A stretch of DNA of 63,608 nt, counting the filler, from Dimorphilus gyrociliatus (Eukaryota > Animalia > Annelida): NCBI GenBank assembly GCA_904063045.1. It is 4 parts of 4 records of this genome, joined end to end, with 100 filler letters (N's around TTAATTAATTAA, not from the genome) between each part and the next. Parts side by side here need not be neighbours in the genome. Positions count along the whole stretch, not along the records: positions 32,887 to 55,648 come from CAJFCJ010000254.1; 3 more parts are not named here. The stretch is one strand, 5' to 3'. The notes under the pieces were generated by a model. The model was not told the DNA's origin and made no database searches. It saw only the letters and a program-made list of their open reading frames with translations. The translations under genes and the position numbers were made by a program. Every line of letters starts with the position of its first letter. Within the stretch, counting starts at the first letter, position 1. Shown here one piece after another: positions 5,940 to 55,648 of the stretch.

Positions 5940-6194
5940 TTTCTTCCAAGACTATGGCCTATCTTGGTATAAATATATCTTTATTGAAATTTTGTAGTGT
6001 ACTAAAATGCCTTAAAAAAACAGTATAATGAGATACATACAACAAATTGGGGTTATTCAACTGACAAATGGCTACTATATTACTTCTGCTTGTTTGCATT
6101 TTATATGAAAACACAATGTTACAGCCACATCCACAATATGATATATCGATGTTTTCGGTTATAAAGCTGAGGTTGAGACATTTCCATATTAGTG

Positions 6195-32886: not shown

Positions 32887-33816
32887 GTTAATTGTCACTG
32901 GCTCTATTTTGAATTTTTCCACAGTATCCTGTTCTGGAAGTGGGAAGAACTTGATGAAGCCCTTCCTTAATAGGAAGAGCTTTTGACCAGTCCATTCATT
33001 GCTATTTGGAGTTCTTTGTTCAGTTTTCTCTAGTTCCAGTAGGAGCTCTCTGTTTCTCTTATTGGCTTCCTCTAATTTATTATTAGCTTCCTGTAATTTA
33101 TTACTAGCTTCCTCCAGCTTACTGGAGCTTGCTTTGATTGTACTTTCTAGCTCTACCACTTTGTTCCTAAGGTCTAGATTATCTTTTCGTAGGTTATTCA
33201 ATGTGGGTCTACTCAGACCCACATAAGAGTATTTATTGTTACAGAGAACTGAGTTCTCATATTGCTCATGAGCTAACTCCTTAGGCAGAGGTGTATTAAA
33301 ATTCTCCAAGAGCTCCAGGGTAACCCCTTGGATACTAACTATTGTTGGTCTGGTACTACAAGGGAACTCATTCGGGTTTGTCCCTCTAATGTCTGGGTTA
33401 CTTTTCTTAAACTTAGCTATTTCTACCCAGTCAGCATTATATAGTAATTGCAACAATGTACTCACTTTCTTGACATGGAAGTGTTCTGTCTCTGGTTGGA
33501 CCATGATAGGAAGGATTCTTATGTTGGTAGTGTTGCAGGTCCTCATATGAAGAGCCAGAGCTCCAACATTGTCTTTGCTTGTTTTTGATTTTTTTAATGA
33601 AAATCCATACATTCTATGTAGTGGAGATATGGTGAAACTAGCCATAGCCCAGTTGCACTTTTTGCAATCAGCAATGAAGAACAAGTGGTCTGAATTACAA
33701 TTGAGGTCTCCCTCAATCTTTTTAGTAATACGGCCATCTCTGGAGCTCCAGGACCCTCCCTGTATTAGGGCTGGGCAAAGTTTGCACTTATTTGTCATGC
33801 ATCTAGAAGCTGGCAT
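32887..33816 (-). CDS. PLE ORF3, partial (cut by contig end)
   Basis: Same as 37870-39075 apart from indels near the contig end. Confidence 0.85.
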
Positions 33817-33944
33817 CTTTAGGAAGTACTTGTTAACACTGTCAAGTGAAGAGGATGACTGAGGTTCTGCACCAGTATATATAGTGGTATAGTTGAGTAC
33901 TGTCAGAGGTGTTGAGTACTAAGTTGTAAGAACTGTTGAAGCTC

Positions 33945-34215
33945 ACTTGAGCTCTTGGAGCTCTATTGAGTTCTTGGAGCTCTACTGAGCTCTTAGAGCT
34001 CTTGGAGCTCTACTGAGATCTTAGAGCTCTTGGAGCTCTACTGAGCTCTTAGAGCTCTTGGAGCTCTACTGAGTTCTTGGAGCTCTACTGAGCTCTTCAA
34101 GGTCTCCTGTGGTATTGGAGCTCAACTGAGCTACTGTAGCTCCTTGGAGCTCTTGGACCTTATTGTGGCTAACTGTAGCTTTTGGAGTTCATTGTAGCTT
34201 GTAGAGCTTGTTGTA
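33945..34215. repeat. GAGCTC palindrome-rich tandem repeats between the RT stop and ORF3
   Basis: GAGCTCTTGGAGCTCTACT / GAGCTCTTA units, repeated at 39204-39474, about 44340-44610 and about 49560-49830. Confidence 0.9.
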
Positions 34216-34229
34216 GCTGCTGAAATTCA

Positions 34230-36506: not shown

Positions 36507-36577
36507 ACTTGGTTCTGTTTTATTGATAAAAACATGTTTAAAAACATTATAATTGTTATGCTGTTGTGCTTGAAGAG

Positions 36578-37360
36578 TTAGGAGTTTCCCTGGTCCATAG
36601 TCTCCTCATCAGCACTCATTTTCTCTGTAATTCCTTTAAATAAGACAGTCATGATTGCCAATTCCTTTCTTAGTTCTGAGATTTCATCCTTAGAGTTCTT
36701 GTAAGGTTCTTTGTGTCTGGTTTTGTCTGCTGGTTTCTTGGATCTCTGTATGGTAGGGAGCTCTTTGAAATTTTCATGGAGCTCTCTATTGAAAGAGTCA
36801 TCTAAGGGAGCTTTTAGATTTTTGGTAACCAAGTATACACTTTCTTTAAGTTGGGCCCAATTAATCTTTTTGCCATATTTTTGTATCGATCTGGTTTTAG
36901 CTACTTCAATAGCTTTCTTAACCTCTGATTGATTGTAATTTTGCTGATCATTTTTTATCTTGTCCCTCATTTTAGAGAGCCTCTCATTGAGCTCCTCCAG
37001 CACCACTCTATTTGTTTCTCTAGCACAAGTATTGGCTATTTCATGTAGTTGGTTGAGTCTTTCCCCAGTAATGGGACCTCCTGTGATTCTAATTGAGTCC
37101 ATCATATCCATGGCCTTTTTGGTCCAAGGGTTATATTCCTTAAGTCTCTCAATCTGGTGAATAGAACTGTAAGTTTTACTCATAGCTCTAGTCAGGGCTT
37201 TTTCCTTGTCACTTAGAGAACCTTTAAAACCATTTGCATCAGGTGCAGTCTGGCTCTTTGTGACTTGTACCCATCTGGGTTTGTCTGGAGCTCTGGAGTA
37301 GGGTGTCTTTCTTCCTGTTTTTTTTGTTCTTCTAGGAGCTTGGTTTTGTTTAGGGTCCAT
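36578..37360 (-). CDS. PLE ORF1, a basic coiled-coil protein (260 aa from MDPKQ)
   Basis: First ATG at 37360; helical heptad-rich segments; lies directly upstream of the RT. Confidence 0.85.
   Translation of the reverse strand: MDPKQNQAPRRTKKTGRKTPYSRAPDKPRWVQVTKSQTAPDANGFKGSLSDKEKALTRAMSKTYSSIHQIERLKEYNPWTKKAMDMMDSIRITGGPITGERLNQLHEIANTCARETNRVVLEELNERLSKMRDKIKNDQQNYNQSEVKKAIEVAKTRSIQKYGKKINWAQLKESVYLVTKNLKAPLDDSFNRELHENFKELPTIQRSKKPADKTRHKEPYKNSKDEISELRKELAIMTVLFKGITEKMSADEETMDQGNS
36584..36590 (-). promoter_or_regulatory. -1 ribosomal frameshift slippery heptamer G GGA AAC
   Basis: XXXYYYZ in the correct ORF1 phase, one codon before the stop; the -1 frame is open into the RT; also at 41843-41849 and 47205-47211. 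Confidence 0.75.
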
Positions 37361-37721
37361 TGCCAAAGTCTGTACTGGGTAGGTTAGGGTTTGGTAAGGG
37401 TTATGGGTTAGGCCACTCACACAACTCTGGTAATGTTTTTGGGAACTGGTTAGCTAGTGTTCCAGTGTAATACCTAACTTTTACTCAATGTTAGGTAGGG
37501 GTTCTCCTTGGTCAGGATTATAGATCTGGGCTCCCAGTCTTAGTCAGGTTTTGGGAACTGGTTAGTTGGTGTTCCAGGGTTCTACCAATTTTCCAATAGG
37601 TAGGAGTTCTCTATGTCTGAGCTCCTTTGTGCTTCAGTGCTCTGTCAAACTCTTAGTCTTATTCAATAACAATTAAATTTTTTCTTTTTCATCAACTTTT
37701 TATTTTAAACTTTAAAACATA

Positions 37722-37766
37722 TTACAACAATATTTCGCCTCTACTTGAGGCTTCATCAGGTTGTAA
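37722..37766 (-). ncRNA. Minimal type I hammerhead ribozyme of the PLE
   Basis: TTACAAC-CTGATGA-A-GCCTC(AAGTA)GAGGC-GAAA-TA-TT-GTTGTAA. Confidence 0.85.
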
Positions 37767-37869
37767 GTTAAACTGAACACAAACATAAGTATTTATACCA
37801 TCACCACAAAAAATTTATATATAAAAAACATGAAAACAAGATGGCTGCCCTTGCACTAGCGCCACCTAA

Positions 37870-39075
37870 CTACATTTTTCTTTGTTTCTTTGAAGGTACT
37901 ACTTCAAATTCATCACCTGATCTTTTGATTAGGAGTCTTTGTTGTATTCCAATATTGCTATTCTCTTTTGGAGTGCTTTCATATTGATACTCACCATCTT
38001 CCATATCATCATAGTTGTCATCATCTTCTTCCTCCTCAGTCTGTTCCTTGGTAGGGACCATTTCTTTGTCTGGAGTTTGTTGAGCTCCTCTGTCTATAGT
38101 TTGTTGAGCTCCTGGTGTAGAGTTGGAGTCAAGATCCTCAAGGTTAATTGTCACTGGCTCTATTTTGAATTTTTCCACAGTATCCTGTTCTGGAAGTGGG
38201 AAGAACTTGATGAAGCCCCTTCCCTTAATAGGAAGAGCTTTTGACCAGTCCCATTCATTGCTATTTGGAGTTCTTTGTTCAGTTTTCTCTAGTTCCAGTA
38301 GGAGCTCTCTGTTTCTCTTATTGGCTTCCTCTAATTTATTATTAGCTTCCTGTAATTTATTACTAGCTTCCTCCAGCTTACTGGAGCTTGCTTTGATTGT
38401 ACTTTCTAGCTCTACCACTTTGTTCCTAAGGTCTAGATTATCTTTTCGTAGGTTATTCAATGTGGGTCTACTCAGACCCACATAAGAGTATTTATTGTTA
38501 CAGAGAACTGAGTTCTCATATTGCTCATGAGCTAACTCCTTAGGCAGAGGTGTATTAAAATTCTCCAAGAGCTCCAGGGTAACCCCTTGGATACTAACTA
38601 TTGTTGGTCTGGTACTACAAGGGAACTCATTCGGGTTTGTCCCTCTAATGTCTGGGTTACTTTTCTTAAACTTAGCTATTTCTACCCAGTCAGCATTATA
38701 TAGTAATTGCAACAATGTACTCACTTTCTTGACATGGAAGTGTTCTGTCTCTGGTTGGACCATGATAGGAAGGATTCTTATGTTGGTAGTGTTGCAGGTC
38801 CTCATATGAAGAGCCAGAGCTCCAACATTGTCTTTGCTTGTTTTTGATTTTTTTAATGAAAATCCATACATTCTATGTAGTGGAGATATGGTGAAACTAG
38901 CCATAGCCCAGTTGCACTTTTTGCAATCAGCAATGAAGAACAAGTGGTCTGAATTACAATTGAGGTCTCCCTCAATCTTTTTAGTAATACGGCCATCTCT
39001 GGAGCTCCAGGACCCTCCCTGTATTAGGGCTGGGCAAAGTTTGCACTTATTTGTCATGCATCTAGAAGCTGGCAT
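37870..39075 (-). CDS. PLE ORF3 (401 aa): degenerate GIY-YIG-like N-terminus, coiled coil, acidic tract and C-terminal NLS-like motif
   Basis: CxxxxCxxC...NC...CxxC spacing mirrors the RT's EN; KLEEASN/KLQEANN/KLEEANK heptads; EEEDDDNYDD; PSKKQRKM. Confidence 0.85.
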   Translation of the reverse strand: MPASRCMTNKCKLCPALIQGGSWSSRDGRITKKIEGDLNCNSDHLFFIADCKKCNWAMASFTISPLHRMYGFSLKKSKTSKDNVGALALHMRTCNTTNIRILPIMVQPETEHFHVKKVSTLLQLLYNADWVEIAKFKKSNPDIRGTNPNEFPCSTRPTIVSIQGVTLELLENFNTPLPKELAHEQYENSVLCNNKYSYVGLSRPTLNNLRKDNLDLRNKVVELESTIKASSSKLEEASNKLQEANNKLEEANKRNRELLLELEKTEQRTPNSNEWDWSKALPIKGRGFIKFFPLPEQDTVEKFKIEPVTINLEDLDSNSTPGAQQTIDRGAQQTPDKEMVPTKEQTEEEEDDDNYDDMEDGEYQYESTPKENSNIGIQQRLLIKRSGDEFEVVPSKKQRKM

Positions 39076-39488
39076 CTTTAGGAAGTACTTGTTAACACTG
39101 TCAAGTGAAGAGGATGACTGAGGTTCTGCACCAGTATATATAGTGGTATAGTTGAGTACTGTCAGAGGTGTTGAGTACTAAGTTGTAAGAACTGTTGAAG
39201 CTCACTTGAGCTCTTGGAGCTCTATTGAGTTCTTGGAGCTCTACTGAGCTCTTAGAGCTCTTGGAGCTCTACTGAGATCTTAGAGCTCTTGGAGCTCTAC
39301 TGAGCTCTTAGAGCTCTTGGAGCTCTACTGAGTTCTTGGAGCTCTACTGAGCTCTTCAAGGTCTCCTGTGGTATTGGAGCTCAACTGAGCTACTGTAGCT
39401 CCTTGGAGCTCTTGGACCTTATTGTGGCTAACTGTAGCTTTTGGAGTTCATTGTAGCTTGTAGAGCTTGTTGTAGCTGCTGAAATTCA

Positions 39489-41765
39489 TTACAGTTCTTG
39501 GAGTTCACTTTGGCTTTTCTGGAGTAGAATTTTTTCTATGTGTTTTTCCATCATCTCATCAACTTTCTTATTGATAAGCCAGTGTCTGGTAGTAGTTGGG
39601 ATCCTAAAGGCAGTTATTGACTTATACATTTGGAAGTGAGAACTGTTAGGGGCTAGCTGGTGGATTGTTCTCTTGACTTTCTCAGCTATTAGTTGGGCTC
39701 CATTGTGTTGTGGTATGAGGAGTGGTACCATTTCCTTGGTGGTAAAACCTTCATGTTTATTAAGACCATGTGGGAACAGTGTATCCAAATGGTTGATGAT
39801 TTCAGTTTCTTTTCTCATTAACCAAACTATTACTGAGCTCTCTGTGAGTTCCTTAGGAGCTACAGCAGCTATGTAGATCTTGAACTTCTTGATATCATGT
39901 GTTGCCATATGGTTATATAGTGGTCTATCTATCTTGTTTTTGAAGCCCAAATTATGGGTACCCCATCTACACTTGATAGTATCTGTAGTCATACCCACAT
40001 ATGCTAACCCACACATAGAGCATTGTAGGATATAGACACAACCCTTGGTGTTACAGTTAATGCTTTGGGTTAAGCTCCAAGAGTTGACCTGGTATAGGTC
40101 AAATACCTCATCTCTGGAGTCCAGTCTGAGGCAAGTATCACATCTAGTGTTACAACATTTATTGACTTTATACCTCAGTGCCTTTTTTTCTTCAGCTCTG
40201 GTGTTGAATTTTTTAATGGTGTCCCTCCCCATTCTCCAGGTGTAGCCATTGACTTTATTGATTCTAATGAGATCTTTGAACTGTGAGATAGCCATTTTGG
40301 GATCTTTGCAGTTTCTCATATATCTAGTTAGCTGGCTCATTAGGATACCTCTGAATGTGTGTGGTGGATGATTGGATTTGGTGTGTAGCAGTATTCTGGA
40401 GTCAGTAGCCTTAAAATGGGTTTCCCAGGAAAGAGAGTTCCCTAGTATATGTAGGTCCAGGTCCAGAAAAGTACTTGATTTAGGGTTCTGGGACCAAGTG
40501 AGCTTGATATCTGGATTTCTGTTGTTTAGTCTTGTCTTGAACTCCATGATGTCCCTGTCTGGTTTAGTGACCAAAATGATATCATCAATGTACCTGCCAT
40601 AGTACTCAATGTCCTCTGTAAAATCTGTGACCAATTCGTGTTCCCAGGTGTGTAACACTATGTTTGCATATGCTGGACTAAATGGAGCTCCCATAGCTGT
40701 GCCCTTTATTTGCAGGAACCTGTGGTTCCCAAAGGTGAAATCATTGTTGTTGAGACAAATCCAAAGGAGTTCCAAGATTAGTTCATCAGGTCTACCTTCA
40801 TGGTAGTGGGTTAACATGAACTCTTTAACAGCTTTTATGCCCCATTGAGGGTTAATGCTTGGGTATAGAGCTTCTACATCTGCTGTGAAGATCCCTCTGT
40901 TTTGCCAATTATGTATCATAGATAGTTTGCCAATGCAATGTTGGGTGTTTTTAACATAGCTAGTGGTACTTTTTGCCATTTTGACCAGATAGTGATCAAC
41001 AAATTTAGATATTTTATATAGATCAGAGCCTACATAGCTCACCACTGGTCTCCCCTTGGGGATCCTATATGGTACTCTCCATTGGGAGCTGTGTTTATGA
41101 ATTTTAGGTAGGAGGTAAAACTTTCTATCTCCTGGGCTATTCTGTGGAGCCATCAGAGTTGCTGTAGATTTGGTAATAATTTTCATTGTAACCAATTCAT
41201 TAAGGATTTCATTTAACCGGGTCCATTGGGTAGAGCTTATTTTATTGCTGACCTGTTTGTAGGTTGTTCTGTCACAGAGCTGTGTCATGGCTTCAAAGAC
41301 ATAGTCCTCTTTGTCCATTAAGACAATCCTTCTTCCTTTATCAGCTGGTTTAATGATAATGTTAGGATGATTGTTGAGGAAGTTTTTCATTAGGCCTTGA
41401 TTTTCAAAACCCTTCTGGGCTCTATTAATTTTTTCAGAGCCCTTTATAATGTTATATATCCTGTCTGTGATATGGTTAATTTCTGGAATATGACTAGAGG
41501 GCATGTAATTTAACTCCCTCATTAGTTCAGGTAGAGATGGTGCTTGTATGTCAAGAAGTTTTTTCTTTAGTGGATTATTTCGAAATCTTGGTGTACCATT
41601 TTTCTCAATGATCTTTAGCCATTTTAATGTATAATCCAAGATCCCTGTGAAGTGCAAGTTTATAAATTTGTTTGGGGCCCAAGTCCAGGCAAAGCCTAGA
41701 CCTTGTGCCATAGTGTTCAGGCAAGAACTCTTGATGTTAGAGTTCCTACATAGGTTAAAAACCAT
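39489..41765 (-). CDS. PLE RT-GIY-YIG, second copy
   Basis: Translation identical to 34230-36506. Confidence 0.97.
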   Translation of the reverse strand: MVFNLCRNSNIKSSCLNTMAQGLGFAWTWAPNKFINLHFTGILDYTLKWLKIIEKNGTPRFRNNPLKKKLLDIQAPSLPELMRELNYMPSSHIPEINHITDRIYNIIKGSEKINRAQKGFENQGLMKNFLNNHPNIIIKPADKGRRIVLMDKEDYVFEAMTQLCDRTTYKQVSNKISSTQWTRLNEILNELVTMKIITKSTATLMAPQNSPGDRKFYLLPKIHKHSSQWRVPYRIPKGRPVVSYVGSDLYKISKFVDHYLVKMAKSTTSYVKNTQHCIGKLSMIHNWQNRGIFTADVEALYPSINPQWGIKAVKEFMLTHYHEGRPDELILELLWICLNNNDFTFGNHRFLQIKGTAMGAPFSPAYANIVLHTWEHELVTDFTEDIEYYGRYIDDIILVTKPDRDIMEFKTRLNNRNPDIKLTWSQNPKSSTFLDLDLHILGNSLSWETHFKATDSRILLHTKSNHPPHTFRGILMSQLTRYMRNCKDPKMAISQFKDLIRINKVNGYTWRMGRDTIKKFNTRAEEKKALRYKVNKCCNTRCDTCLRLDSRDEVFDLYQVNSWSLTQSINCNTKGCVYILQCSMCGLAYVGMTTDTIKCRWGTHNLGFKNKIDRPLYNHMATHDIKKFKIYIAAVAPKELTESSVIVWLMRKETEIINHLDTLFPHGLNKHEGFTTKEMVPLLIPQHNGAQLIAEKVKRTIHQLAPNSSHFQMYKSITAFRIPTTTRHWLINKKVDEMMEKHIEKILLQKSQSELQEL

Positions 41766-41836
41766 ACTTGGTTCTGTTTTATTGATAAAAACATGTTTAA
41801 AAACATTATAATTGTTATGCTGTTGTGCTTGAAGAG

Positions 41837-42033
41837 TTAGGAGTTTCCCTGGTCCATAGTCTCCTCATCAGCACTCATTTTCTCTGTAATTCCTTTAAAT
41901 AAGACAGTCATGATTGCCAATTCCTTTCTTAGTTCTGAGATTTCATCCTTAGAGTTCTTGTAAGGTTCTTTGTGTCTGGTTTTGTCTGCTGGTTTCTTGG
42001 ATCTCTGTATGGTAGGGAGCTCTTTGAAATTTT
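41837..42033 (-). pseudogene. 5'-truncated ORF1 fused to the telomere
   Basis: Matches 36578-36774, then switches to TTAGG(G)n. Confidence 0.9.
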
Positions 42034-42640
42034 AGGTTAGGGGTTAGGGTTAGGTTAGGGTTAGGGTTAGGTTAGGGTTAGGGTTAGGTTTAGGGTTAGG
42101 GTTAGGGTTAGGGTTAGGTTAGGGTTAGGGTTAGGGTTAGGGTTAGGGTTAGGTTAGGTTAGGGTTAGGGTTAGGGTTAGGGTTAGGTTAGGTTAGGTTA
42201 GGGTTAGGTTAGGTTAGGGTTAGGGTTAGGGTTAGGTTAGGGTTAGGGTTAGGGTTAGGGTTAGGTTAGGGTTAGGGTTAGGGTTAGGTTAGGGTTAGGG
42301 TTAGGTTAGGGTTAGGTTAGGGTTAGGGTTAGGGTTAGGTTAGGGTTAGGTTAGGGTTAGGGTTAGGGTTAGGGTTAGGGTTAGGTTAGGGTTAGGGTTA
42401 GGGTTAGGGTTAGGTTAGGGTTAGGGTTAGGGTTAGGGTTAGGGTTAGGGTTAGGGTTAGGGTTTAGGTTAGGGTTAGGTTAGGGTTAGGGTTAGGGTTA
42501 GGGTTAGGGTTAGGGTTAGGGTTAGGGTTAGGGTTAGGGTTAGGGTTAGGTTAGGTTAGGGTTAGGTTAGGGTTAGGGTTAGGTTAGGGTTAGGTTAGGG
42601 TTAGGGTTAGGTTAGGGTTAGGGTTAGGGTTAGGGTTAGG
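42032..42640 (+). repeat. Telomeric repeat tract, (TTAGGG)n mixed with TTAGG
   Basis: About 610 bp running into the gap. Confidence 0.97.
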
Positions 42641-43307
42641 NNNNNNNNNNNNNNNNNNNNNNNNNNNNNNNNNNNNNNNNNNNNNNNNNNNNNNNNNNNN
42701 NNNNNNNNNNNNNNNNNNNNNNNNNNNNNNNNNNNNNNNNNNNNNNNNNNNNNNNNNNNNNNNNNNNNNNNNNNNNNNNNNNNNNNNNNNNNNNNNNNNN
42801 NNNNNNNNNNNNNNNNNNNNNNNNNNNNNNNNNNNNNNNNNNNNNNNNNNNNNNNNNNNNNNNNNNNNNNNNNNNNNNNNNNNNNNNNNNNNNNNNNNNN
42901 NNNNNNNNNNNNNNNNNNNNNNNNNNNNNNNNNNNNNNNNNNNNNNNNNNNNNNNNNNNNNNNNNNNNNNNNNNNNNNNNNNNNNNNNNNNNNNNNNNNN
43001 NNNNNNNNNNNNNNNNNNNNNNNNNNNNNNNNNNNNNNNNNNNNNNNNNNNNNNNNNNNNNNNNNNNNNNNNNNNNNNNNNNNNNNNNNNNNNNNNNNNN
43101 NNNNNNNNNNNNNNNNNNNNNNNNNNNNNNNNNNNNNNNNNNNNNNNNNNNNNNNNNNNNNNNNNNNNNNNNNNNNNNNNNNNNNNNNNNNNNNNNNNNN
43201 NNNNNNNNNNNNNNNNNNNNNNNNNNNNNNNNNNNNNNNNNNNNNNNNNNNNNNNNNNNNNNNNNNNNNNNNNNNNNNNNNNNNNNNNNNNNNNNNNNNN
43301 NNNNNNG
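42641..43307. other. Scaffold gap
   Basis: N-run without the linker. Confidence 0.95.
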
Positions 43308-46044
43308 ATATCAAGCTCACTTGGTCCCAGAACCCTAAATCAAGTACTTTTCTGGACCTGGACCTACATATACTAGGGAACTCTTTTCCTGGGAAACCAT
43401 TTTAAGGCTACTGACTCCAGAATACTGCTACACACCAAATCCAATCATCCACCACACACATTCAGAGGTATCCTAATGAGCCAGCTAACTAGATATATGA
43501 GAAACTGCAAAGATCCCAAATGGCTATCTCACAGTTCAAAGATCTCATTAGAATCAATAAAGTCAATGGCTACACCTGGAGAATGGGGAGGGACACCATT
43601 AAAAAATTCAACACCAGAGCTGAAGAAAAAAGGCACTGAGGTATAAAGTCAATAAATGTTGTAACACTAGATGTGATACTTGCCTCAGACTGGACTCCAG
43701 AGATGAGGTATTTGACCTATACCAGGTCAACTCTTGGAGCTTAACCCAAAGCATTAACTGTAACACCAAGGGTTGTGTCTATATCCTACAATGCTCTATG
43801 TGTGGGTTAGCATATGTGGGTATGACTACAGATACTATCAAGTGTAGATGGGGTACCCATAATTTGGGCTTCAAAAACAAGATAGATAGACCACTATATA
43901 ACCATATGGCAACACATGATATCAAGAAGTTCAAGATCTACATAGCTGCTGTAGCTCCTAAGGAACTCACAGAGAGCTCAGTAATAGTTTGGTTAATGAG
44001 AAAAGAAACTGAAATCATCAACCATTTGGATACACTGTTCCCACATGGTCTTAATAAACATGAAGGTTTTACCACCAAGGAAATGGTACCACTCCTCATA
44101 CCACAACACAATGGAGCCCAACTAATAGCTGAGAAAGTCAAGAGAACAATCCACCAGCTAGCCCCTAACAGTTCTCACTTCCAAATGTATAAGTCAATAA
44201 CTGCCTTTAGGATCCCAACTACTACCAGACACTGGCTTATCAATAAGAAAGTTGATGAGATGATGGAAAAACACATAGAAAAAATTCTACTCCAGAAAAG
44301 CCAAAGTGAACTCCAAGAACTGTAATGAATTTCAGCAGCTACAACAAGCTCTACAAGCTACAATGAACTCCAAAAGCTACAGTTAGCCACAATAAGGTCC
44401 AAGAGCTCCAAGGAGCTACAGTAGCTCAGTTGAGCTCCAATACCACAGGAGACCTTGAAGAGCTCAGTAGAGCTCCAAGAACTCAGTAGAGCTCCAAGAG
44501 CTCTAAGAGCTCAGTAGAGCTCCAAGAGCTCTAAGATCTCAGTAGAGCTCCAAGAGCTCTAAGAGCTCAGTAGAGCTCCAAGAACTCAATAGAGCTCCAA
44601 GAGCTCAAGTGAGCTTCAACAGTTCTTACAACTTAGTACTCAACACCTCTGACAGTACTCAACTATACCACTATATATACTGGTGCAGAACCTCAGTCAT
44701 CCTCTTCACTTGACAGTGTTAACAAGTACTTCCTAAAGATGCCAGCTTCTAGATGCATGACAAATAAGTGCAAACTTTGCCCAGCCCTAATACAGGGAGG
44801 GTCCTGGAGCTCCAGAGATGGCCGTATTACTAAAAAGATTGAGGGAGACCTCAATTGTAATTCAGACCACTTGTTCTTCATTGCTGATTGCAAAAAGTGC
44901 AACTGGGCTATGGCTAGTTTCACCATATCTCCACTACATAGAATGTATGGATTTTCATTAAAAAAATCAAAAACAAGCAAAGACAATGTTGGAGCTCTGG
45001 CTCTTCATATGAGGACCTGCAACACTACCAACATAAGAATCCTTCCTATCATGGTCCAACCAGAGACAGAACACTTCCATGTCAAGAAAGTGAGTACATT
45101 GTTGCAATTACTATATAATGCTGACTGGGTAGAAATAGCTAAGTTTAAGAAAAGTAACCCAGACATTAGAGGGACAAACCCGAATGAGTTCCCTTGTAGT
45201 ACCAGACCAACAATAGTTAGTATCCAAGGGGTTACCCTGGAGCTCTTGGAGAATTTTAATACACCTCTGGCCTAAGGAGTTAGCTCATGAGCAATATGAG
45301 AACTCAGTTCTCTGTAACAATAAATACTCTTATGTGGGTTGAGTAGACCACATTGGAATAACCTACCGAAAAGATAATCTAGACCTTAGGAACAAAGTGG
45401 TAGAGCTAGAAAGTACAATCAAAGCAAGCTCCAGTAAGCTGGAGGAAGCTAGTAATAAATTACAGGAAGCTAATAATAAATTAGAGGAAGCCAATAAGAG
45501 AAACAGAGAGCTCCTACTGGAACTAGAGAAACTGAACAAAGAACTCCAAATAGCAATGAATGGGACTGGTCAAAAGCTCTTCCTATTAAGGGAAGGGGCT
45601 TCATCAGTTCTTCCCACTTCCAGAACAGGATACTGTGGAAAAATTCAAAATAGAGCCAGTGACAATTAACCTTGAGGATCTTGATCCCAACCTACACCAG
45701 GAGCTCAACAAACTATAGACAGAGGAGCTCAACAAACTCCAGACAAAGAAATGGTCCCTACCAAGGAACAGACTGAGGAGGAAGAAGATGATGACACTAT
45801 GATGATATGGAAGATGGTGAGTATCAATATGAAAGACTCCAAAAGAGAATAGCAATATTGGAATCAACAAAGACTCCTAATCAAAAGATCAGGTGATGAA
45901 TTTGAAGTAGTACCTTCAAAGAAACAAAGAAAATGTAGTTAGGGTGGCGCTAGTGCAAGGGCAGCCATCTTGTTTTCCATGTTTTTTATATATAAATTTT
46001 TTGTGGTGATGGTATAAATACTTATGTTTGTGTTCAGTTTTAAC

Positions 46045-46089
46045 TTACAACCTGATGAAGCCTCAAGTAGAGGCGAAATATTGTTGTAA
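46045..46089 (+). ncRNA. PLE hammerhead ribozyme copy
   Basis: Same motif as 37722-37766. Confidence 0.85.
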
Positions 46090-49000
46090 TATGTTTTAAA
46101 GTTTAAAAAAAAAGTTGATGAAAAAGAAAAAATTTAATTGTTATTGAATAAGACTAAGAGTTTGACAGAGACTGAAGCACAAAGGAGCTCAGACATAGAG
46201 AACTCCTACCTATTGGAAATTGGTAGAACCCTGGAACACCAACTAACCAGTTCCCAAAACCTGACTAAGACTGGGAGCCCAGATCTTATAATCCTGACCA
46301 AGGAGAACCCTACCTAACATTGAGTAAAAGTTAGGTATTACACTGGAACACTAGCTAACCAGTTCCAAAAACATTACCAGAGTTGTGTGAGTGGCCTAAC
46401 CCATAACCCTTACCAAACCTAACCTACCCAGTACAGACTTTGCAATGGACCCTAAACAAAACCAAGCTCCTAGAAGAACAAAAAAAACAGGAAGAAAGAC
46501 ACCCTAGCTCCAGAGCTCCAGACAAACCCAGATGGGTACAAGTCACAAAGAGCCAGACTGGCACCTGATGCAAATGGTTTTAAAGGTTCTCTAAGTGACA
46601 AGGAAAAAGCCCTGACTAGAGTATGAGTAAAACTTCAGTTCTATTCACCAGATTGAGAGACTTAAGGAATATAACCTTGGACCAAAAGGCCATGGATATG
46701 ATGGACTCAATTAGAATCACAGGAGGTCCCATTACTGGGGAAGACTCAACCAACTACATGAATAGCCAATACTTGTGCTAGAGAAACAAATAGAGTGGTG
46801 CTGGAGGAGCTCAATGAGAGGCTCTCTAAAATGAGGGACAAGATAAAAATGATCAGCAAAATTACAATCAATCAGAGGTTAAGAAAGCTATTGAAGTAGC
46901 TAAAACCAGATCGATACAAAATATGGCAAAAGATTAATTGGGCCCACTTAAAGAAGTGTATACTTGGTTACCAAAATCTAAAAGCTCCCTTAGATGACTC
47001 TTTCAATAGAGAGCTCCATGAAAATTTCAAAGAGCTCCCTACCATACAGAGATCCAAGAAACCAGCAGACAAAACCAGACACAAAGAACCTTACAAGAAC
47101 TCTAAGGATGAAATCTCAGAACTAAGAAAGGAATTGGCAATCATGACTGTCTTATTTAAAGGAATTACAGAGAAAATGAGTGCTGATGAGGAGACTATGG
47201 ACCAGGGAAACTCCTAACTCTTCAAGCACAACAGCATAACAATTATAATGTTTTAAACATGTTTTTATCAATAAAACAGAACCAAGTATGGTTTTTAACC
47301 TATGTAGGAACTCTAACATCAAGAGTTCTTGCCTGAACACTATGGCACAAGGTCTAGGCTTTGCCTGGACTTGGGCCCCAAACAAATTTATAAACTTGCA
47401 CTTCACAGGGATCTTGGATTATACATTAAAATGGCTAAAGATCATTGAGAAAATGGTACACCAAATTTCGAAATAATCCACTAAGAAAAACTTCTTGACA
47501 TACAAGCACCATCTCTACCTGAACTAATGAGGGAGTTAAATTACATGCCCTCTAGTCATATTCCAGAAATTAACCATATCACAGACAGGATATATAACAT
47601 TATAAAGGGCTCTGAAAAAATTAATAGAGCCCAGAAGGGTTTTGAAAATCAAGGCCTAATGAAAAACTTCCTCAACAATCATCCTAACATTATCATTAAA
47701 CCAGCTGATAAGGAAGAAGGATTGTCTTAATGGACAAGAGGACTATGTCTTTGAAGCCATGACACAGCTCTGTGACAGAACAACCTACAAACAGGTCAGC
47801 AATAAAATAAGCTCTACCCAATGGACCCGGTTAAATGAAATCCTTAATGAATTGGTTACAATGAAAATTATTACCAAATCTACAGCAACTCTGATGGCTC
47901 CACAGAATAGCCCAGGAGATAGAAAGTTTTACCTCCTACCTAAAATTCATAAACACAGCTCCCAATGGAGAGTACCATATAGGATCCCCAAGGGGAGACC
48001 AGTGGTGAGCTATGTAGGCTCTGATCTATATAAAATATCTAAATTTGTTGATCACTATCTGGTCAAAATGGCAAAAAGTACCACTAGCTATGTTAAAAAC
48101 ACCCAACATTGCATTGGCAAACTATCTATGATACATAATTGGCAAAACAGAGGGATCTTCACAGCAGATGTAGAAGCTCTATACCCAAGCATTAACCCTC
48201 AATGGGGCATAAAAGCTGTTAAAGAGTTCATGTTAACCCACTACCATGAAGGTAGACCTGATGAACTAATCTTGGAACTCCTTTGGATTTGTCTCAACAA
48301 CAATGATTTCACCTTTGGGAACCACAGGTTCCTGCAAATAAAGGGCACAGCTATGGGAGCTCCATTTAGTCCAGCATATGCAAACATAGTGTTACACACC
48401 TGGGAACACGAATTGGTCACAGATTTTACAGAGGACATTGAGTACTATGGCAGGTACATTGATGATATCATTTTGGTCACTAAACCAGACAGGGACATCA
48501 TGGAGTTCAAGACAAGACTAAACAACAGAAATCCAGATATCAAGCTCACTTGGTCCCAGAACCCTAAATCAAGTACTTTTCTGGACCTGGACCTACATAT
48601 ACTAGGGAACTCTCTTTCCTGGGAAACCCATTTTAAGGCTACTGACTCCAGAATACTGCTACACACCAAATCCAATCATCCACCACACACATTCAGAGGT
48701 ATCCTAATGAGCCAGCTAACTAGATATATGAAACTGCAAAGATCCCAAAATGGCTATCTCACAGTTCAAAGATCTCATTAGAATCAATAAAGTCAATGGC
48801 TACACCTGGAGAATGGGAGGGACACCATTAAAAAATTCAACACCAGAGCTGAAGAAAAAAGGCACTGAGGTATAAAGTCAATAAATGTTGTAACACTAGA
48901 TGTATACTTGCCTCAGACTGGACTCCAGAGATGAGGTATTGACCTATACCAGGTCAACTCTTGGAGCTTAACCCAAAGCATTAACTGTAACACCAAGGGT

Positions 49001-51271
49001 TGTGTCTATATCCTACAATGCTCTATGTGTGGGTTAGCATATGTGGGTATGACTACAGATACTATCAAGTGTAGATGGGGTACCCATAATTTGGGCTTCA
49101 AAAACAAGATAGATAGACCACTATATAACCATATGGCAACACATGATATCAAGAAGTTCAAGATCTACATAGCTGCTGTAGCTCCTAAGGAACTCACAGA
49201 GAGCTCAGTAATAGTTTGGTTAATGAGAAAAGAAACTGAAATCATCAACCATTTGGATACACTGTTCCCACATGGTCTTAATAAACATGAAGGTTTTACC
49301 ACCAAGGAAATGGTACCACTCCTCATACCACAACACAATGGAGCCCAACTAATAGCTGAGAAAGTCAAGAGAACAATCCACCAGCTAGCCCCTAACAGTT
49401 CTCACTTCCAAATGTATAAGTCAATAACTGCCTTTAGGATCCCAACTACTACCAGACACTGCTTATCAATAAGAAAGTTGATGAGATGATGGAAAAACAC
49501 ATAGAAAAAATTCTACTCCAGAAAAGCCAAAGTGAACTCCAAGAACTGTAATGAATTTCAGCAGCTACAACAAGCTCTACAAGCTACAATGAACTCCAAA
49601 AGCTACAGTTAGCCACAATAAGGTCCAAGAGCTCCAAGGAGCTACAGTAGCTCAGTTGAGCTCCAATACCACAGGAGACCTTGAAGAGCTCAGTAGAGCT
49701 CCAAGAACTCAGTAGAGCTCCAAGAGCTCTAAGAGCTCAGTAGAGCTCCAAGAGCTCTAAGATCTCAGTAGAGCTCCAAGAGCTCTAAGAGCTCAGTAGA
49801 GCTCCAAGAACTCAATAGAGCTCCAAGAGCTCAAGTGAGCTTCAACAGTTCTTACAACTTAGTACTCAACACCTCTGACAGTACTCAACTATACCACTAT
49901 ATATACTGGTGCAGAACCTCAGTCATCCTCTTCACTTGACAGTGTTAACAAGTACTTCCTAAAGATGCCAGCTTCTAGATGCATGACAAATAAGTGCAAA
50001 CTTTGCCCAGCCCTAATACAGGGAGGGTCCTGGAGCTCCAGAGATGGCCGTATTACTAAAAAGATTGAGGAGACCTCAATTGTAATTCAGACCACTTGTT
50101 CTTCATTGCTGATTGCAAAAAGTGCAACTGGGCTATGGCTAGTTTCACCATATCTCCACTACATAGAATGTATGGATTTTCATTAAAAAAATCAAAAACA
50201 AGCAAAGACAATGTTGGAGCTCTGGCTCTTCATATGAGGACCTGCAACACTACCAACATAAGAATCCTTCCTATCATGGTCCAACCAGAGACAGAACACT
50301 TCCATGTCAAGAAAGTGAGTACATTGTTGCAATTACTATATAATGCTGACTGGGTAGAAATAGCTAAGTTTAAGAAAAGTAACCCAGACATTAGAGGGAC
50401 AAACCCGAATGAGTTCCCTTGTAGTACCAGACCAACAATAGTTAGTATCCAAGGGTTACCCTGGAGCTCTTGGAGAATTTTAATACACCTCTGCCTAAGG
50501 AGTTAGCTCATGAGCAATATGAGAACTCAGTTCTCTGTAACAATAAATACTCTTATGTGGGTCTGAGTAGACCCACATTGAATAACCTACGAAAAGATAA
50601 TCTAGACCTTAGGAACAAAGTGGTAGAGCTAGAAAGTACAATCAAAGCAAGCTCCAGTAAGCTGGAGGAAGCTAGTAATAAATTACAGGAAGCTAATAAT
50701 AAATTAGAGGAAGCCAATAAGAGAAACAGAGAGCTCCTACTGGAACTAGAGAAAACTGAACAAAGAACTCCAAATAGCAATGAATGGGACTGGTCAAAAG
50801 CTCTTCCTATTAAGGGAAGGGGCTTCATCAAGTTCTTCCCACTTCCAGAACAGGATACTGTGGAAAAATTCAAAATAGAGCCAGTGACAATTAACCTTGA
50901 GGATCTTGACTCCAACTCTACACCAGGAGCTCAACAAACTATAGACAGAGGAGCTCAACAAACTCCAGACAAAGAAATGGTCCCTACCAAGGAACAGACT
51001 GAGGAGGAAGAAGATGATGACAACTATGATGATATGGAAGATGGTGAGTATCAATATGAAAGCACTCCAAAAGAGAATAGCAATATTGGAATACAACAAA
51101 GACTCCTAATCAAAAGATCAGGTGATGAATTTGAAGTAGTACCTTCAAAGAAACAAAGAAAAATGTAGTTAGGTGGCGCTAGTGCAAGGGCAGCCATCTT
51201 GTTTTCATGTTTTTTATATATAAATTTTTTGTGGTGATGGTATAAATACTTATGTTTGTGTTCAGTTTAAC

Positions 51272-51316
51272 TTACAACCTGATGAAGCCTCAAGTAGAGG
51301 CGAAATATTGTTGTAA
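51272..51316 (+). ncRNA. PLE hammerhead ribozyme copy
   Basis: Same motif as 37722-37766. Confidence 0.85.
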
Positions 51317-51645
51317 TATGTTTTAAAGTTAAAATAAAAAGTTGATGAAAAAGAAAAAATTTAATTGTTATTGAATAAGACTAAGAGTTTGACAGAGCAC
51401 TGAAGCACCAAGGAGCTCAGACATAGAGAACTCCTACCTATTGGAAAATTGGTAGAACCCTGGAACACCAACTAACCAGTTCCCAAAACCTGACTAAGAC
51501 TGGGAGCCCAGATCTATAATCCTGACCAAGGAGAACCCCTACCTAACATTGAGTAAAAGTTAGGTATTACACTGGAACACTAGCTAACCAGTTCCCAAAA
51601 ACATTACCAGAGTTGTGTGAGTGGCCTAACCCATAACCCTTACCA

Positions 51646-51714
51646 AACCCTAACCCTAACCCTAACCCTAACCTAACCCTAACCCTAACCCTAACCCTAA
51701 CCCTAACCCTAACC
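51646..51714 (-). repeat. About 11 telomeric repeats at the proximal junction of the PLE array
   Basis: (CCCTAA)n on the + strand, between the element's 3' end and unique DNA. Confidence 0.95.
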
Positions 51715-53640
51715 AGTACTTTGGTGTGTTAATAATGAGCAGGAAGGAATAGGTGAGAATTTGAATATTTAAAATGTATTTGTTACTAGTCATGAACAAT
51801 TGAAAATAACTTCTTTGATTATACAAAAATTTTTTTGAAAAAACGAGGATTAATATTTAAATTTTTAACTCCTTTCTTTATTATAGTTCCAAAATCATTC
51901 ATATTTAATTTTTCACTTTCTGTAGACTTTCACAGTATGAGTTATGATATCTGTATCATATTACCAAGGGTGTGTTTTTGCTTTCTGGATGCTTTCTGGG
52001 TCTATTATTGATTAAAAGTCGTACACTCTGTGATATTTAGACTTTAGATATTATAGAATTTTAGAAAGGCTTTTATTTTGTAGCAATTATAATGGGGGAA
52101 TTATAGAATCACTTTTATGTCATACAAATTATAATTGTGGAGCTTTAGAAAGACTTTTAATTAGTAGAATTAGATTCTAGAACTTTAGAAACACCTTTAT
52201 TTTGCAGGAAATAGATTCTTTGACCATAACAGATGGTGCCATTATGGAATTAACAAACAATATAGATAAAATGCATATTAAACTTGTTACATCTTATTCA
52301 AAAACAGATGAGGAACAGGCAGGCTTGTTTTTGCACTGCCACATGTTAGCCATAAGTGATGTAATAGTTTTTTTTGTTTTTGTTATATGTGCATTATGAG
52401 ACTGTTACATTTCAACTTTGTAATCCTGTGCACTAAGATATAATGATATATGAATGCTTAGACTTTAGATATTAGGGTACCTTAGAAAGACTTCTATTTT
52501 ATAGGAATTAGAATGGTGCAACTATAGAAATACTACTATTTTGTATGAATTATAATGGTGGAACTTTTGAAAGACTTTTATTTTGTAGAGTTAACTTTAG
52601 CACTTTAAAAAGAAATGTGTCAAAGTTGTTTTTCTTAACTATTATCAGATGTTAATGGGACAGATGTGTTATGTGGCAACATGTGCTGACTATATAGCCT
52701 TTGTTTAGGGATTATGTTTTTGTGACATATGCAATCTTTTGATAAATTGAACCCAAGCTTTGGGAAATGTATAAAAGAAAATACATTTCACCAATTTGGC
52801 AGTTCAGTTCTTAACTGTTAACTGATTGTTTAAACTTATTTGTTTAGAACTAGAAACTCATTTACTCAATAGATATTCTTTAAATGAAATACTGGTATTT
52901 TGTTGAATTATTTCTACCGAAATTACATTTATTAAGACTATTTGTGGATGAACTTGAAAAGTTCTATTTGTTTGAGTACTTTGGTGCATTGATAAATGAT
53001 TGGAAAGGACGAGTACTGCTCTGAAGAAGCAGAAATTCCTACAATTATAATACAACAAAGTACAAATCCTTTGACCAAGTAAATCTAAGCTTTGGTAAAA
53101 ATCTTTTGTATAGTAAAAAATGGTAGAATTTGACTAGAATTAGTTTTTCAATTGAGTAAATATTTTACTTTTCCTTCCATTGATTGTTAACAATGGAAAA
53201 GGCAAGTAATAAGTTATTGATGACAGATATAAGATATGTTGATTTTTTCTCCAATGTGTTGAGCATGTTTTGTATCATATTTCCAAAATAAAAATTTATG
53301 GCTCTTGAAATTGTATAATGATTTTTCATAAATCATTCTGGTCAGGTAATAATGCAACAGTAGATATTATCCCTTTGTATTTATTAATGAATAAATACTG
53401 AACTTGCATGCAAAACTTTAAGTCTATAGATAGGAATATATCAAGTATTAAAATCTTTATTTCCTTCTTGTGTTTTTGGTTAGGATTTTTGAGTTGTGTT
53501 AGTTGTAATGAATCGACACTGATAAATCAAGTATAATTTTTTTATCTTTGTATGTGCCCAAACTCTTTTTCCATGCATTCCCAAAACTCTTGCCATCACC
53601 CTTAATTTCCCAATATCCTTCTATTTTATAACTATTGTAC

Positions 53641-54016
53641 TGCTCTTGCTTGGCAAAATCTATGCGCTTGAAAGTTATAACAATACTGGTTCTACTCGAA
53701 CCTTTAAACAAATGTTTAAATTAAAACGGTTTATTCGCAATAATAATACTTAAGCAAGTAACAATATGAGAGTTCAATAGCAGAGTTAGGTTAGGACTTG
53801 GGGTTAGGGTTAGGCCACACCCTAGGCAAGTTAATTAAATTATAACTTGACCAAACCTTTATTGGTAATTAAAGATGAGCCTTCAAGCTGACTAATGAAA
53901 CCTCTCTTTGGCCAATGTTATAGCATTTTCTTGCATAGATTTTTAAGATGTACATGTATAAGTTGCATAAAATAATAGAGTTCAAGCATGTTAAATATAA
54001 CCAATGTTGTACACAT
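53641..54016 (-). repeat. R1 copy whose internal ~290 bp is replaced by a telomere-like patch
   Basis: Its reverse complement matches 32154-32353 and 32640-32786, joined through TAGGTTAGGACTTGGGGTTAGGGTTA. Confidence 0.85.
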
Positions 54017-54641
54017 GTACTATGATATCTCAATTATATTCTGTAATTAATTGATGACTATTTTCTATAAAACTTTAAACAAACTACTTTAAAGGGGACA
54101 ACCAATTTTGACTGTTTATTGAAAGTTGGTCTTGCAAAATTTACTGTGTCCAATTTTTCCTGCCATTTCCTTTATGGTTTCTCTCTATATTCTGATGTTT
54201 AACTTGTTAACTGAAGCAATTCATTATTATTAAATATTAATAATTAAGAATGCTGTATGTTTTGAGAGTGTTTTCTGATCTTAAGTGAATGCTTTTTATC
54301 TCAACCCAAAAATACCATATATTCTACTTGCTGTGTTTAAATCAATACAAGAGAACAAAGAAAAGAAACACTCATTGATTAATATTCCATATGTATTCCT
54401 GTTGAAAGAATGTTTTTTATATTTCTGACATTTTAGAAATAAGGAACAAAAAATGAACTGAGGAAGCCCTATGAATTTTTCATAAATTGAATGAAGACAT
54501 ATTCAATCGAAAGATTGATTATTAATCTTTCTAAACAAAATTTTGAACTTTTATATTAATAATTCATAGAAATATTTCCTATATAACCACATAATGTTTT
54601 CTTATACATCTCAAATACGCTTTAGATTTTCCAAAAAAATA

Positions 54642-55530
54642 ATGAATATTTTAATTTTTCAATTAATAACAATATTTCTTTTGACAATAAGAAATAATGA
54701 TTGTGCAAGTAAAAATTATGATTTTTATATTTATTCATATTTCTCCTTATCTTTTATTAATATACAGTTTGCGATTTCTTTCATCAAGAAGATAAACAGT
54801 TAGCAACAAGCACATATGTTGTTATTTATAATATAGATGATAGAGGAGTAGACTATTGTAAAAAGTTATGCTATTATCTTGAACTTTGCAAGTATGTTTA
54901 TAGAAAGAGAGAGAGGGAGAGTAAAATCTACACATTTTTTCCACTTTAGGAGTTTCTATGTTGATAAACAGGATAACAACAAATGTTATCTTTCAACTGA
55001 CCATGCAGGATTAGGAGGAAGTCAGTTACCTCAAGTCATTGGTTATGATTATTATGAAAAACCAGATGTTTGTGGTAATTAAAAAGTGTTAGATTTTTTT
55101 GTAAAATAAAAGTATAAATAATTTCTTTTTCAGATACTCCACAATTTGGAGACACAAGTAAATAACTAAATGCAATAAAAGCAAAGTACATAAATATATT
55201 AATAACATTTCTTTGTTTTTGTCTGTCTCCTTCCCCTTTAAAGTTACCTATAAAAGTTATCCTGATCAGCTTGGCGGATTTACTTATCATACAGTTTTTA
55301 ATACAGGTGAAGCTGACTGCAAAAAACTTTGTAGCATGCTCAGTGATTGCAAGTTAGTTATAAAATATAATAAATGTCTTATAATTTTATCATTTCTTTT
55401 TTACAGTACAATTAGTATTGTAACTTCAAATCAGATATGTCACATTTTCAAAGCAACCTTTGATGAACTTACAGATCGTCGTCAATCAGTAGGGGATACT
55501 ACATTTTCAAAAATTGGGTGTAACAATTGA
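54642..55530 (+). CDS. Secreted protein with two PAN/apple-like domains; six exons
   Basis: Signal peptide MNILIFQLITIFLL; two CKKLC...C...KCY/IC modules; five short GT-AG introns splice in frame to the TGA at 55530. Confidence 0.75.
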
Positions 55531-55648
55531 ACCTTCATTGGATCCAGGTAAAGAATGTTTGTTTATTTTCAAACCCAAATCAATTAAATAGTTATCTTCA
55601 TTTAATCATTTAACATATAACAACATGCCACAACATTAAAACTGCATG

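Follow-up and report, generated by a model that had tools for sequence, protein, structure and literature searches.

How does a retroelement that still encodes an endonuclease come to end directly against telomeric repeats? Penelope-like elements (PLEs) have reverse transcriptases (RTs) that are the closest relatives, the sister group, of telomerase (TERT), and the accepted split among them is that endonuclease-bearing (EN+) PLEs integrate anywhere, whereas endonuclease-lacking (EN-) PLEs attach to chromosome ends via a telomere-complementary 3' stretch (PMC8557442). The question arises from a locus of the annelid Dimorphilus gyrociliatus (assembly GCA_904063045.1), contained in a window of 63,608 nucleotides (the whole stretch of DNA analysed, four parts joined end to end), of which positions 32887-55648 come from CAJFCJ010000254.1. 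Here a repeated unit with an RT and a GIY-YIG endonuclease ends in a telomere-like tail that runs into CCCTAA repeats. A first-pass annotation had placed this site at the proximal junction of a terminal array and offered two explanations: the tail of the element RNA anneals to a short telomere and primes cDNA synthesis, or the RT copies its internal template repeatedly, as telomerase does. Our analysis bears out the proximal junction and, among the junctions examined, goes against repeated copying; the locus is probably the proximal end of a head-to-tail array of an EN+ PLE at a TTAGGG chromosome end, attached there by tail-primed synthesis. The literature that we searched yielded nothing on Dimorphilus PLEs or telomeres.

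A head-to-tail array at a chromosome end

Positions 32887-55648 are a scaffold of two contigs with 666 N between them (42641-43306), in which self-comparison and self-BLAST delineate four copies of a unit of about 5.25 kb, a length that applies after correction of assembly indels (Table 1). The left contig terminates in at least 606 bp of GGTTAG repeats seated on a 5'-truncated copy, and within the contig no tail follows beyond this tract; the G-rich strand at 42035-42640 runs 3'-outward, and the site is therefore a chromosome end. The right contig bears the proximal junction and 3.9 kb of flank beyond the tract. The arrangement thus has a terminal location, tails facing the centromere, capped 5'-truncated copies and interspersed head-to-tail arrays, as in the Athena and Coprina elements. 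A second array, at the contig end in L005 (sequences compared with the window carry labels of this kind), likewise has its tails toward the interior.

Many single-base indels in the right contig were corrected by same-species short-read contigs; examples are +C behind 46417 and +G behind 46441, with one more each in the tail and in TTTG(G). ORFs (open reading frames) look broken in the right contig and intact in the left one because the former contains long-read indel errors.

Head-to-head palindromes surround the N gaps, both in the window (32887-51655, gap 42641-43306) and in L003 (2766-6554, the gap, then 6608 onward), and contig 107 has identical flanks on either side of its N gap. Either assembly or scaffolding created these palindromes artefactually, or they reflect the inverted arrangement known for PLEs (PMC3846280).

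ORFs, domains and class of the unit

By its domain content, the unit is a PLE, as the first-pass annotation had it, and one of the EN+ kind with two extra ORFs. ORF2 matches RVT_1 (E 1.3e-10) and GIY-YIG (E 3.2e-6), both above the Pfam cutoff, whereas ORF1 (~261 aa) and ORF3 (401 aa, coiled-coil-like) received no Pfam family assignment. Residues Y57, C61, C64, Y68, G70, R79, H83, H98, E132, and N148 of the GIY-YIG domain are invariant relative to PLE homologues; the CCHH set is complete, with two Cys between GIY and YIG and two His, and the Arg, Glu, and Asn are also present. The C-terminal endonuclease of ORF2 therefore appears intact as judged from these residues. Upstream of GIY-YIG lies a CX4CxxC linker, a motif that points to Neptune/Nematis-like EN+ elements, a likeness judged by motif. 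The RT plus GIY-YIG with CCHH is joined by two further PLE traits, a PLE-type hammerhead ribozyme and partial tandem (pseudo-long-terminal-repeat [pLTR]-like) or inverted copies, with head-to-tail units in the window, in L003/L004 and in L005.

Near the ORF2/ORF3 boundary of every unit there is a 19/28-bp tandem repeat block, in which GAGCTC palindromes are abundant and which gives a chance miRNA-like Rfam match (E 0.07).

Telomere-like tail and unit joints

At the unit-unit joints (46424/46425 on the + strand, 37382/37381 on the - strand) the unit ends in GTGAGTGGCC and then some five degenerate telomeric repeats, the final 10 nt of which are AACCCTAACC; the following unit opens with TACCCAGTACAGACTTTGGCAATGG, whose ATG starts ORF1. 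The tail corresponds to the telomeric stretch described for Athena and Coprina, and its perfect 10-nt end, about 1.7 repeats, has the telomerase-template size that the first-pass annotation had ascribed to it. Similar tails are present in family 2, family 3, L002, and L007, and across the families all finish in CCTAACC.

The joint tail-TACC-CAGTAC is identical and tract-free in 7/7 family-1 unit-unit joints seen, distributed over three arrays, of which one is built from an ORF3-deletion derivative (97.5% identity). Analogous joints occur in family 2 (tail-TGCC-CAGGACAGAC) and family 3 (tail-GGTC-CAGGTAGA); what stands behind the tail thus belongs to the element, as a conserved 5' leader, and families 2 and 3 have the recognizable unit starts TGCCCAGGACAGAC and GGTCCAGGTAGA, respectively. 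Full units most likely spread as multimers, not by separate end additions, and the array would have grown by unequal exchange or, in the manner of pLTR-type PLE insertions, through RNA that is multimeric or read-through.

At the proximal end, the tail is continued in phase at 51655 by 59 nt of CCCTAA repeats with one CCTAA variant, which together with the tail's own 10 nt make about 11.5 repeats, matching the direct run into about 11 repeats described earlier; Tandem Repeats Finder (TRF) gives 15.2 copies at 88% for 51625-51714. The tract length is that of the assembly, the short-read comparison having skipped 51634-51722 as repeat. One short-read contig begins 11 nt before 51723, those 11 letters lying within the skipped stretch, and extends into the flank, which is consistent with the joint between tract and flank.

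Tail-to-tract junctions and a proposed route of attachment

Five tail-to-tract junctions were examined, the one in the window and four others from GCA_904063045.1 contigs (junctions A to E in Table 1). In 4/4 of the further junctions, neither the element 5' leader nor CCAGTAC...TTTGG follows the tract. In addition, copies whose truncation point is 51249 or 51274 have CCCTAA repeats directly before them in short-read contigs. The six trapped tracts, all short, measure about 20 to 115 bp as against at least 606 bp at the terminus, and attachment to short or newly healed ends is therefore favored over random nicking of long telomeres.

From this anatomy we infer a route of attachment. Near its 3' end the element RNA would carry some five degenerate repeats of CCCUAA type, the last 7 to 11 nt perfect, and this stretch would base-pair with the G-rich strand of a telomere that is short or freshly healed, at a 3' overhang or a nick. 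The chromosomal 3'-OH would then prime reverse transcription, and the cDNA, frequently 5'-truncated, would become the new chromosome end and be capped with TTAGGG by telomerase. The ~10 repeats at 51656-51714 would represent an earlier short telomere used as primer, not an RT product. This simpler of the two explanations offered at the outset fits every junction examined.

The same anatomy would fit equally well an endonuclease-dependent, telomere-repeat-specific insertion, of the TRAS/SART type but carried out by a PLE, in which the tail pairs with a G-strand that GIY-YIG has nicked in the tract, and the repeats on either side are pre-existing telomere. The conservation of the catalytic and CCHH residues in the element and all close relatives examined speaks for it, as does the presence of telomere-like tails or downstream CCCTAA tracts in at least L002, L007, and L009, a co-retention suggesting that the endonuclease is used; the tail-like 26-mer at 53787-53812, isolated within an LTR-like repeat and oppositely oriented, points the same way. 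Random nicking should, however, trap longer pieces than the six short tracts when the terminal one is so much longer, and we consider such an insertion unlikely.

A further alternative is 3' transduction, in which a donor at a telomere is transcribed through its tail into CCCTAA and the extended RNA is primed at any GG-ending 3' end. By eye, with no scan made, there is no terminator or poly(A) signal between tail and tract; tract length differs among copies, and TACTGG, where the flank's bottom strand ends at the joint, is a possible partner for a CC end. The tracts before 5'-truncated copies are nevertheless explained no better by transduction than by telomerase capping, and although the present data do not separate it from tail-primed attachment, we regard it as improbable.

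Table 1. Features of the locus and the tail-to-tract junctions (positions are those of the window unless an L label is given)
Feature	Position	Strand	Description
Inner neighbor of the distal-most unit	32887-37381	-	Left contig; unit running off the contig
19/28-bp tandem repeat blocks	33936-34259, 39195-39518, 44337-44619, 49563-49845
Second ORF2 copy	34230-36506	-	In unit 32887-37381
ORF1	36578-37363	-	In unit 32887-37381; 100% identical to DgyrCDS14471
Distal-most unit of left contig	37382-42033	-	5'-truncated at about unit position 597, with telomeric repeats as cap
ORF3	37870-39075	-	Intact; distal-most unit of left contig
ORF2	39489-41765	-	Intact; distal-most unit of left contig
Terminal telomere	42035-42640	+	About 105 GGTTAG repeats, G-strand 3' end facing the contig end, then scaffold gap
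Partial distal (upstream) unit	43307-46424	+	Cut by scaffold gap; head-to-tail with the full unit
Full-length PLE unit	46425-51655	+	ORF1, RT-GIY-YIG ORF2, coiled-coil ORF3, hammerhead, telomere-like tail
Unit 5' start	46425-46443	+	TACCCAGTACAGACTTTG(G), then ORF1 ATG
Type I hammerhead ribozyme, PLE kind	51272-51316	+	Motif search and comparison
3' tail	51625-51655	+	About five degenerate reverse-complement telomeric repeats
Perfect 10-mer closing the tail	51646-51655	+	AACCCTAACC
Interstitial telomeric tract	51656-51714		About 10 CCCTAA repeats, in phase with the tail
Motif opening the proximal flank	51713-51724	+	CCAGTACTTTGG; resembles unit 5' start minus AGAC; ungapped match to LTR-like repeat
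Proximal flank	51715-52030		Low-copy, without PLE protein homology
Second motif copy, ungapped	52975-52986	+	AGTACTTTGGTG in LTR-like repeat 52730-53078, without tail or tract upstream
Junction A	window		Family-1 tail, about 10 repeats, then flank
Junction B	L004 16093 (mirrored at L003 2766)		Family-1 tail, about 4-5 repeats, then 5'-truncated family-2 element starting GGAACATT
Junction C	L003 near 352	reverse	Family-2 tail, about 15 repeats, then unrelated TGTCTTAATTTTGG
Junction D	L005 13528		Family-1 tail, about 19 repeats, then family-1 copy cut to its last 66 nt
Junction E	L005 near 13700		Tail of the 66-nt copy, about 5 repeats, then unrelated TTCTTTTGTTG

The motif behind the tract

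Directly after the tract stand CCAGTAC (51713-51719) and TTTGG (51720-51724), which do resemble the element's own continuation minus 4 nt, the observation that had suggested repeated template copying. Since CC could equally be the end of the last repeat of the tract, what matches independently is AGTAC and TTTGG, aligned with a 4-nt gap. In an anchored test on non-element Dimorphilus DNA, AGTAC with TTTGG within 9 nt was found at 3/51,557 background positions, all three within copies of long terminal repeat (LTR)-type repeats and so not independent. A lenient local alignment without anchoring was uninformative, as 2.8% of background 20-mers score equally. Pure chance is an unlikely source of the resemblance (order 1e-4 per junction, more given the reader's freedom of choice), and its explanation is not certain.

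The motif CCAGTACTTTGG is most likely borne by the flank, to judge from its sequence matches, as a short motif found in the LTR-like repeats of this genome and similar to the element 5' leader. The ungapped AGTACTTTGGTG at 52975 lies 1.26 kb deeper in the same flank, and CCAGTACTTTGGCAAG occurs in L005, also inside an LTR-like repeat; the flank motif fits the repeat, without a gap, better than it fits the element, for which the 4-nt gap is needed. The repeat with AGTACTTTGGTG terminates about 87 nt onward in AGTACA, an end that in other copies is followed by a primer-binding-site (PBS)-like TGGTGCAGTCGAC and a Gag/PNMA-like ORF, and we take it as an LTR end because of these neighbors. Beyond the 12-mer, Smith-Waterman comparison of the flank with three LTR-like repeat copies was no better than with shuffles, the homology being confined to 12-14 nt.

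Second in order comes the possibility that the flank is the full-length 5' end of an older RNA copy that shared the AGTAC...TTTGG leader or initiator and was capped by telomerase before the array arrived. In three PLE families a related (C)CCAG(T/G)(A/T)... start stands directly after the tail, the flank begins precisely at the A of CAGT-type motifs, and initiator-like motifs are present in pLTRs of other PLEs (PMC3846280). Against this stand the low copy number of the flank past the motif, its lack of homology to PLE proteins, and the absence of a hammerhead or tail in + orientation; this origin seems distinctly unlikely.

Repeated template copying ranks last. It would require that the RT, primed on read-through RNA at UUUGG, copied CCAGUAC, then the CCCUAACC template repeatedly, and then the element, making both the tract and CCAGTAC...TTTGG products of the element. 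The position of the 12-nt resemblance at the first bases past the tract, improbable by chance, would suit such a process, as would the telomerase-template size of the tail's perfect 10-11-mer and the sister-group relation of TERT and PLE RTs (PMC8557442). The motif is nevertheless missing from the four other junctions, the very outcome set beforehand as refuting the claim; the loss of AGAC, the loss of TACCC, and priming on read-through RNA would all be needed on top of reiteration; tracts of the same kind cap 5'-truncated ends, including the terminus that is tail-free beyond within its contig; and the motif matches the LTR-like repeat without a gap. We therefore hold reiteration to be highly improbable, and the value of the junction test, which came out against the claim at the fetched junctions, is mostly negative.

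Other origins were tried and set aside. The flank as a decayed PLE found no backing in tblastn of PLE ORFs from three families (nothing below E 0.03), and no hammerhead or tail was found in the flank in the + orientation. A spliced-leader origin of AGTAC...TTTGG was rejected, as the leaders differ among the three PLE families and no evidence of trans-splicing was found, PMC3846280 making no mention of it. The "Y" segment with a CAGTACA end, once considered PLE-related, is actually an LTR end with the PBS-like TGGTGCAGTCGAC and a Gag/PNMA-like ORF.

From about 52031 on, the flank passes into a dispersed repeat family, with loose ends of short-read contigs at 52031-52035. LTR-like repeats ending in AGTACA are found in the window (52730-53078, 53633-54013), in L001 (1-620, 8517-9154, 10930-11009, 19843-20180), and in L005 (15565-15832), and a PBS-like TGG(T/C)GCAGTC(G/A)AC follows the repeat end at L001:599, L001:11001, and L005:15824; at L001:599 a Gag/PNMA-like ORF comes next (Pfam PNMA E 3e-4, below cutoff). 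In L001, a PLE fragment (unit positions 64-1712) directly adjoins one of these LTR ends, and CCTAACCC stands before a different copy. The isolated tail-like 26-mer TAACCCTAACCCCAAGTCCTAACCTA at 53787-53812 on the - strand lies inside the repeat at 53633-54013, with an orientation opposite to that of the array; it is close to the family-3 tail of L006 9150-9182 and stands in for about 285 bp of the L001 repeat copies, and an internal PLE insertion, either abortive or 5'-truncated in the extreme, may have left it there.

Hammerhead ribozyme

The hammerhead in the 3' region of the unit comprises helix I (UUACAAC/GUUGUAA), the core CUGAUGA, a bulged A, helix II (GCCUC/GAGGC), GAA, and a helix III formed by the palindromic AUAU, with cleavage predicted after 51309. 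It agrees with the metazoan PLE kind, which is located in the terminal repeat or 3' region and is recognized by a bulged nucleotide between 9 and 10.1, a G10.1-C11.1 pair, and a short palindromic helix III (PMC4209133). The hammerheads of family 2 (64% identical), of L007, a distant relative, and of L006 (family 3) have compensatory changes in helices I and II; the one in L006 is looser, keeping the core and helices but having no bulged nucleotide and an imperfect palindrome. An Rfam E-value scan of 43307-55648 reported no hammerhead, only one chance miRNA match.

The predicted cleavage site lies about 315 nt before the tail start at 51625, and the corresponding gap in L007 is about 120 nt. 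The ribozyme is thus not immediately upstream of the telomeric stretch, as it is in Athena and Coprina, and priming may be internal on a longer RNA. Neither of the truncation points 51249 and 51274 falls on the predicted site.

Weighing tail-primed attachment

Several points weigh against attachment by a tail-primed cDNA. The distance between hammerhead and tail, unlike in Athena, leaves the source of a 3' end at the tail unexplained, and the 5' and 3' ends of the RNA as well as its pairing with the telomere are deduced from genomic sequence. Simple attachment to an end would not lead one to expect an endonuclease that appears intact. The 12-nt resemblance behind the tract is too good for pure chance, and its attribution to the flank draws on a match of only 12-14 nt. 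Finally, both scaffolds are palindromic around N gaps, and part of the large-scale arrangement may be artefactual.

Copies, families and relatives

Units on contigs 107 and 41 of GCA_904063045.1 are 97.5-100% identical. Rough k-mer depths are about 5700-6700 over the body of the unit, 9900 in the tail region, and about 420 (418) in the unique flank, which suggests some 14-24 element copies per flank copy, a rough guide given that contig depth does not equal copy number. The over-representation of 3' parts is as expected because of 5' truncation.

Run X5 (2017), compared with 46100-52099, contains a high-depth contig composed of the tail, CTAACCCTAACCCTAACCTA, and a copy starting at 51274; its depth is 423 versus 2-30 over the ORFs, and it is identical to the window across 51274-51633. 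This suggests abundant mini-units of hammerhead and tail (~380 nt), spaced by 3-4 telomeric repeats, possibly derivatives of the retrozyme type; should the run be RNA, abundant 3' transcripts would be the alternative.

At the end of CAJFCJ010000041.1 (L005 1-13528), a family-1 derivative forms a tandem of three full units with partial units on either side. Each of these units lacks unit positions 3458-4569, most of ORF3; membership in an array thus does not seem to need ORF3 in cis. A third Dimorphilus PLE family, with an ORF1 59% identical, is present at the end of CAJFCJ010000045.1 (L006 8904-9182, 9880-9910) and has its own hammerhead, a tail reading TAACCCTAACCCCAAGACCTAACC, and the unit start GGTCCAGGTAGA; this element faces the contig end, the reverse of the other arrays, and a 4.8-kb N gap is nearby.

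Relatives from other sources, L002 (Logan SRR23372230) and the ENA metagenome scaffolds L007 and L009, have RT identities of 33-43%, and the GIY-YIG residues are kept in these three and in every relative examined. L002 shares the three-ORF layout and has a telomere-like tail at a unit joint; L007 has an upstream ORF, and its hammerhead precedes a telomere-like tail; downstream of the L009 element come CCCTAA repeats in sense orientation, some perfect and some degenerate, over about 600 bp.

Comparison with known systems

The closest parallel is Athena of bdelloid rotifers, with its Terminons (Gladyshev & Arkhipova 2007; Arkhipova et al. 2017), for which three summaries describe a reverse-complement telomeric stretch with a hammerhead, capped 5' truncations, and head-to-tail arrays (PMC6431247, PMC8557442, PMC3846280). 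The Dimorphilus element shares with it the 3' reverse-complement telomeric stretch, the hammerhead in the 3' region, the centromere-facing tail, 5'-truncated copies with short telomeric caps, and extra coiled-coil ORFs. Athena differs in being a giant element without endonuclease, whose hammerhead adjoins the tail; the Dimorphilus unit has 5.25 kb, belongs to an annelid with a TTAGGG host repeat, and encodes an RT with a canonical C-terminal GIY-YIG, in which all invariant residues are present, a CCHH set, and a CX4CxxC linker. Unlike Athena, its full units also meet at an invariant joint without intervening tract.

Canonical EN+ PLEs have a single ORF and insert genome-wide with a bias for microsatellites, e.g., (TA)n, and the 2021 survey of PLE diversity ascribed telomeric reverse-complement stretches to EN- clades only (PMC8557442). 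Neptune/Nematis-type EN+ PLEs share the RT, the Zn-finger-like linker, GIY-YIG, the hammerhead, and the tandem (pLTR-like) arrangement with the Dimorphilus element, which differs from them in its three ORFs, telomeric tail, and terminal location. Other PLEs at chromosome ends are Coprina (EN-, in fungi, protists, and plants) and the Neptune-like MjPLE01 of kuruma shrimp, which abandoned normal integration (PMC8557442); both share the association with chromosome ends and lack the endonuclease that the Dimorphilus element retains.

Telomerase shares the sister RT lineage and a template of the size of the tail's 10-11-mer (~1.7 repeats). It differs in that the template-like stretch of the Dimorphilus element lies near the 3' end of a 5-kb coding RNA and synthesis would run on into the element after priming, and there is no evidence here of repeated template copying. 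TRAS1 and SART1 of Bombyx mori are endonuclease-bearing non-LTR retrotransposons that sit in fixed orientation in telomeric repeats; they belong to another RT class, with an apurinic/apyrimidinic (AP)-type endonuclease and poly(A) tails, and the mechanism of their target choice has been shown biochemically, whereas the Dimorphilus element is known from its sequence.

Implications

What these comparisons would add is Athena-style telomere attachment in EN+ elements with three ORFs, in an annelid and in relatives from other organisms. We tentatively see in these elements a possible undescribed clade, characterized by a telomere-complementary tail plus hammerhead and by terminal arrays. If this is true, telomere attachment is possible without loss of the endonuclease, and the clade would stand, as an intermediate or through convergence, between EN+ PLEs that insert genome-wide and those EN- PLEs, neighbors of telomerase, that are bound to telomeres. 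An apparently functional GIY-YIG, as predicted from its residues, combined with a telomere-attachment tail in one element would blur the EN+/EN- split. The host, a small, well-assembled, laboratory-culturable annelid with canonical TTAGGG telomeres, would offer a tractable system for the questions that this opens: how synthesis is primed by a telomere-complementary RNA stretch, what role the endonuclease has, and whether the arrays contribute to end protection.

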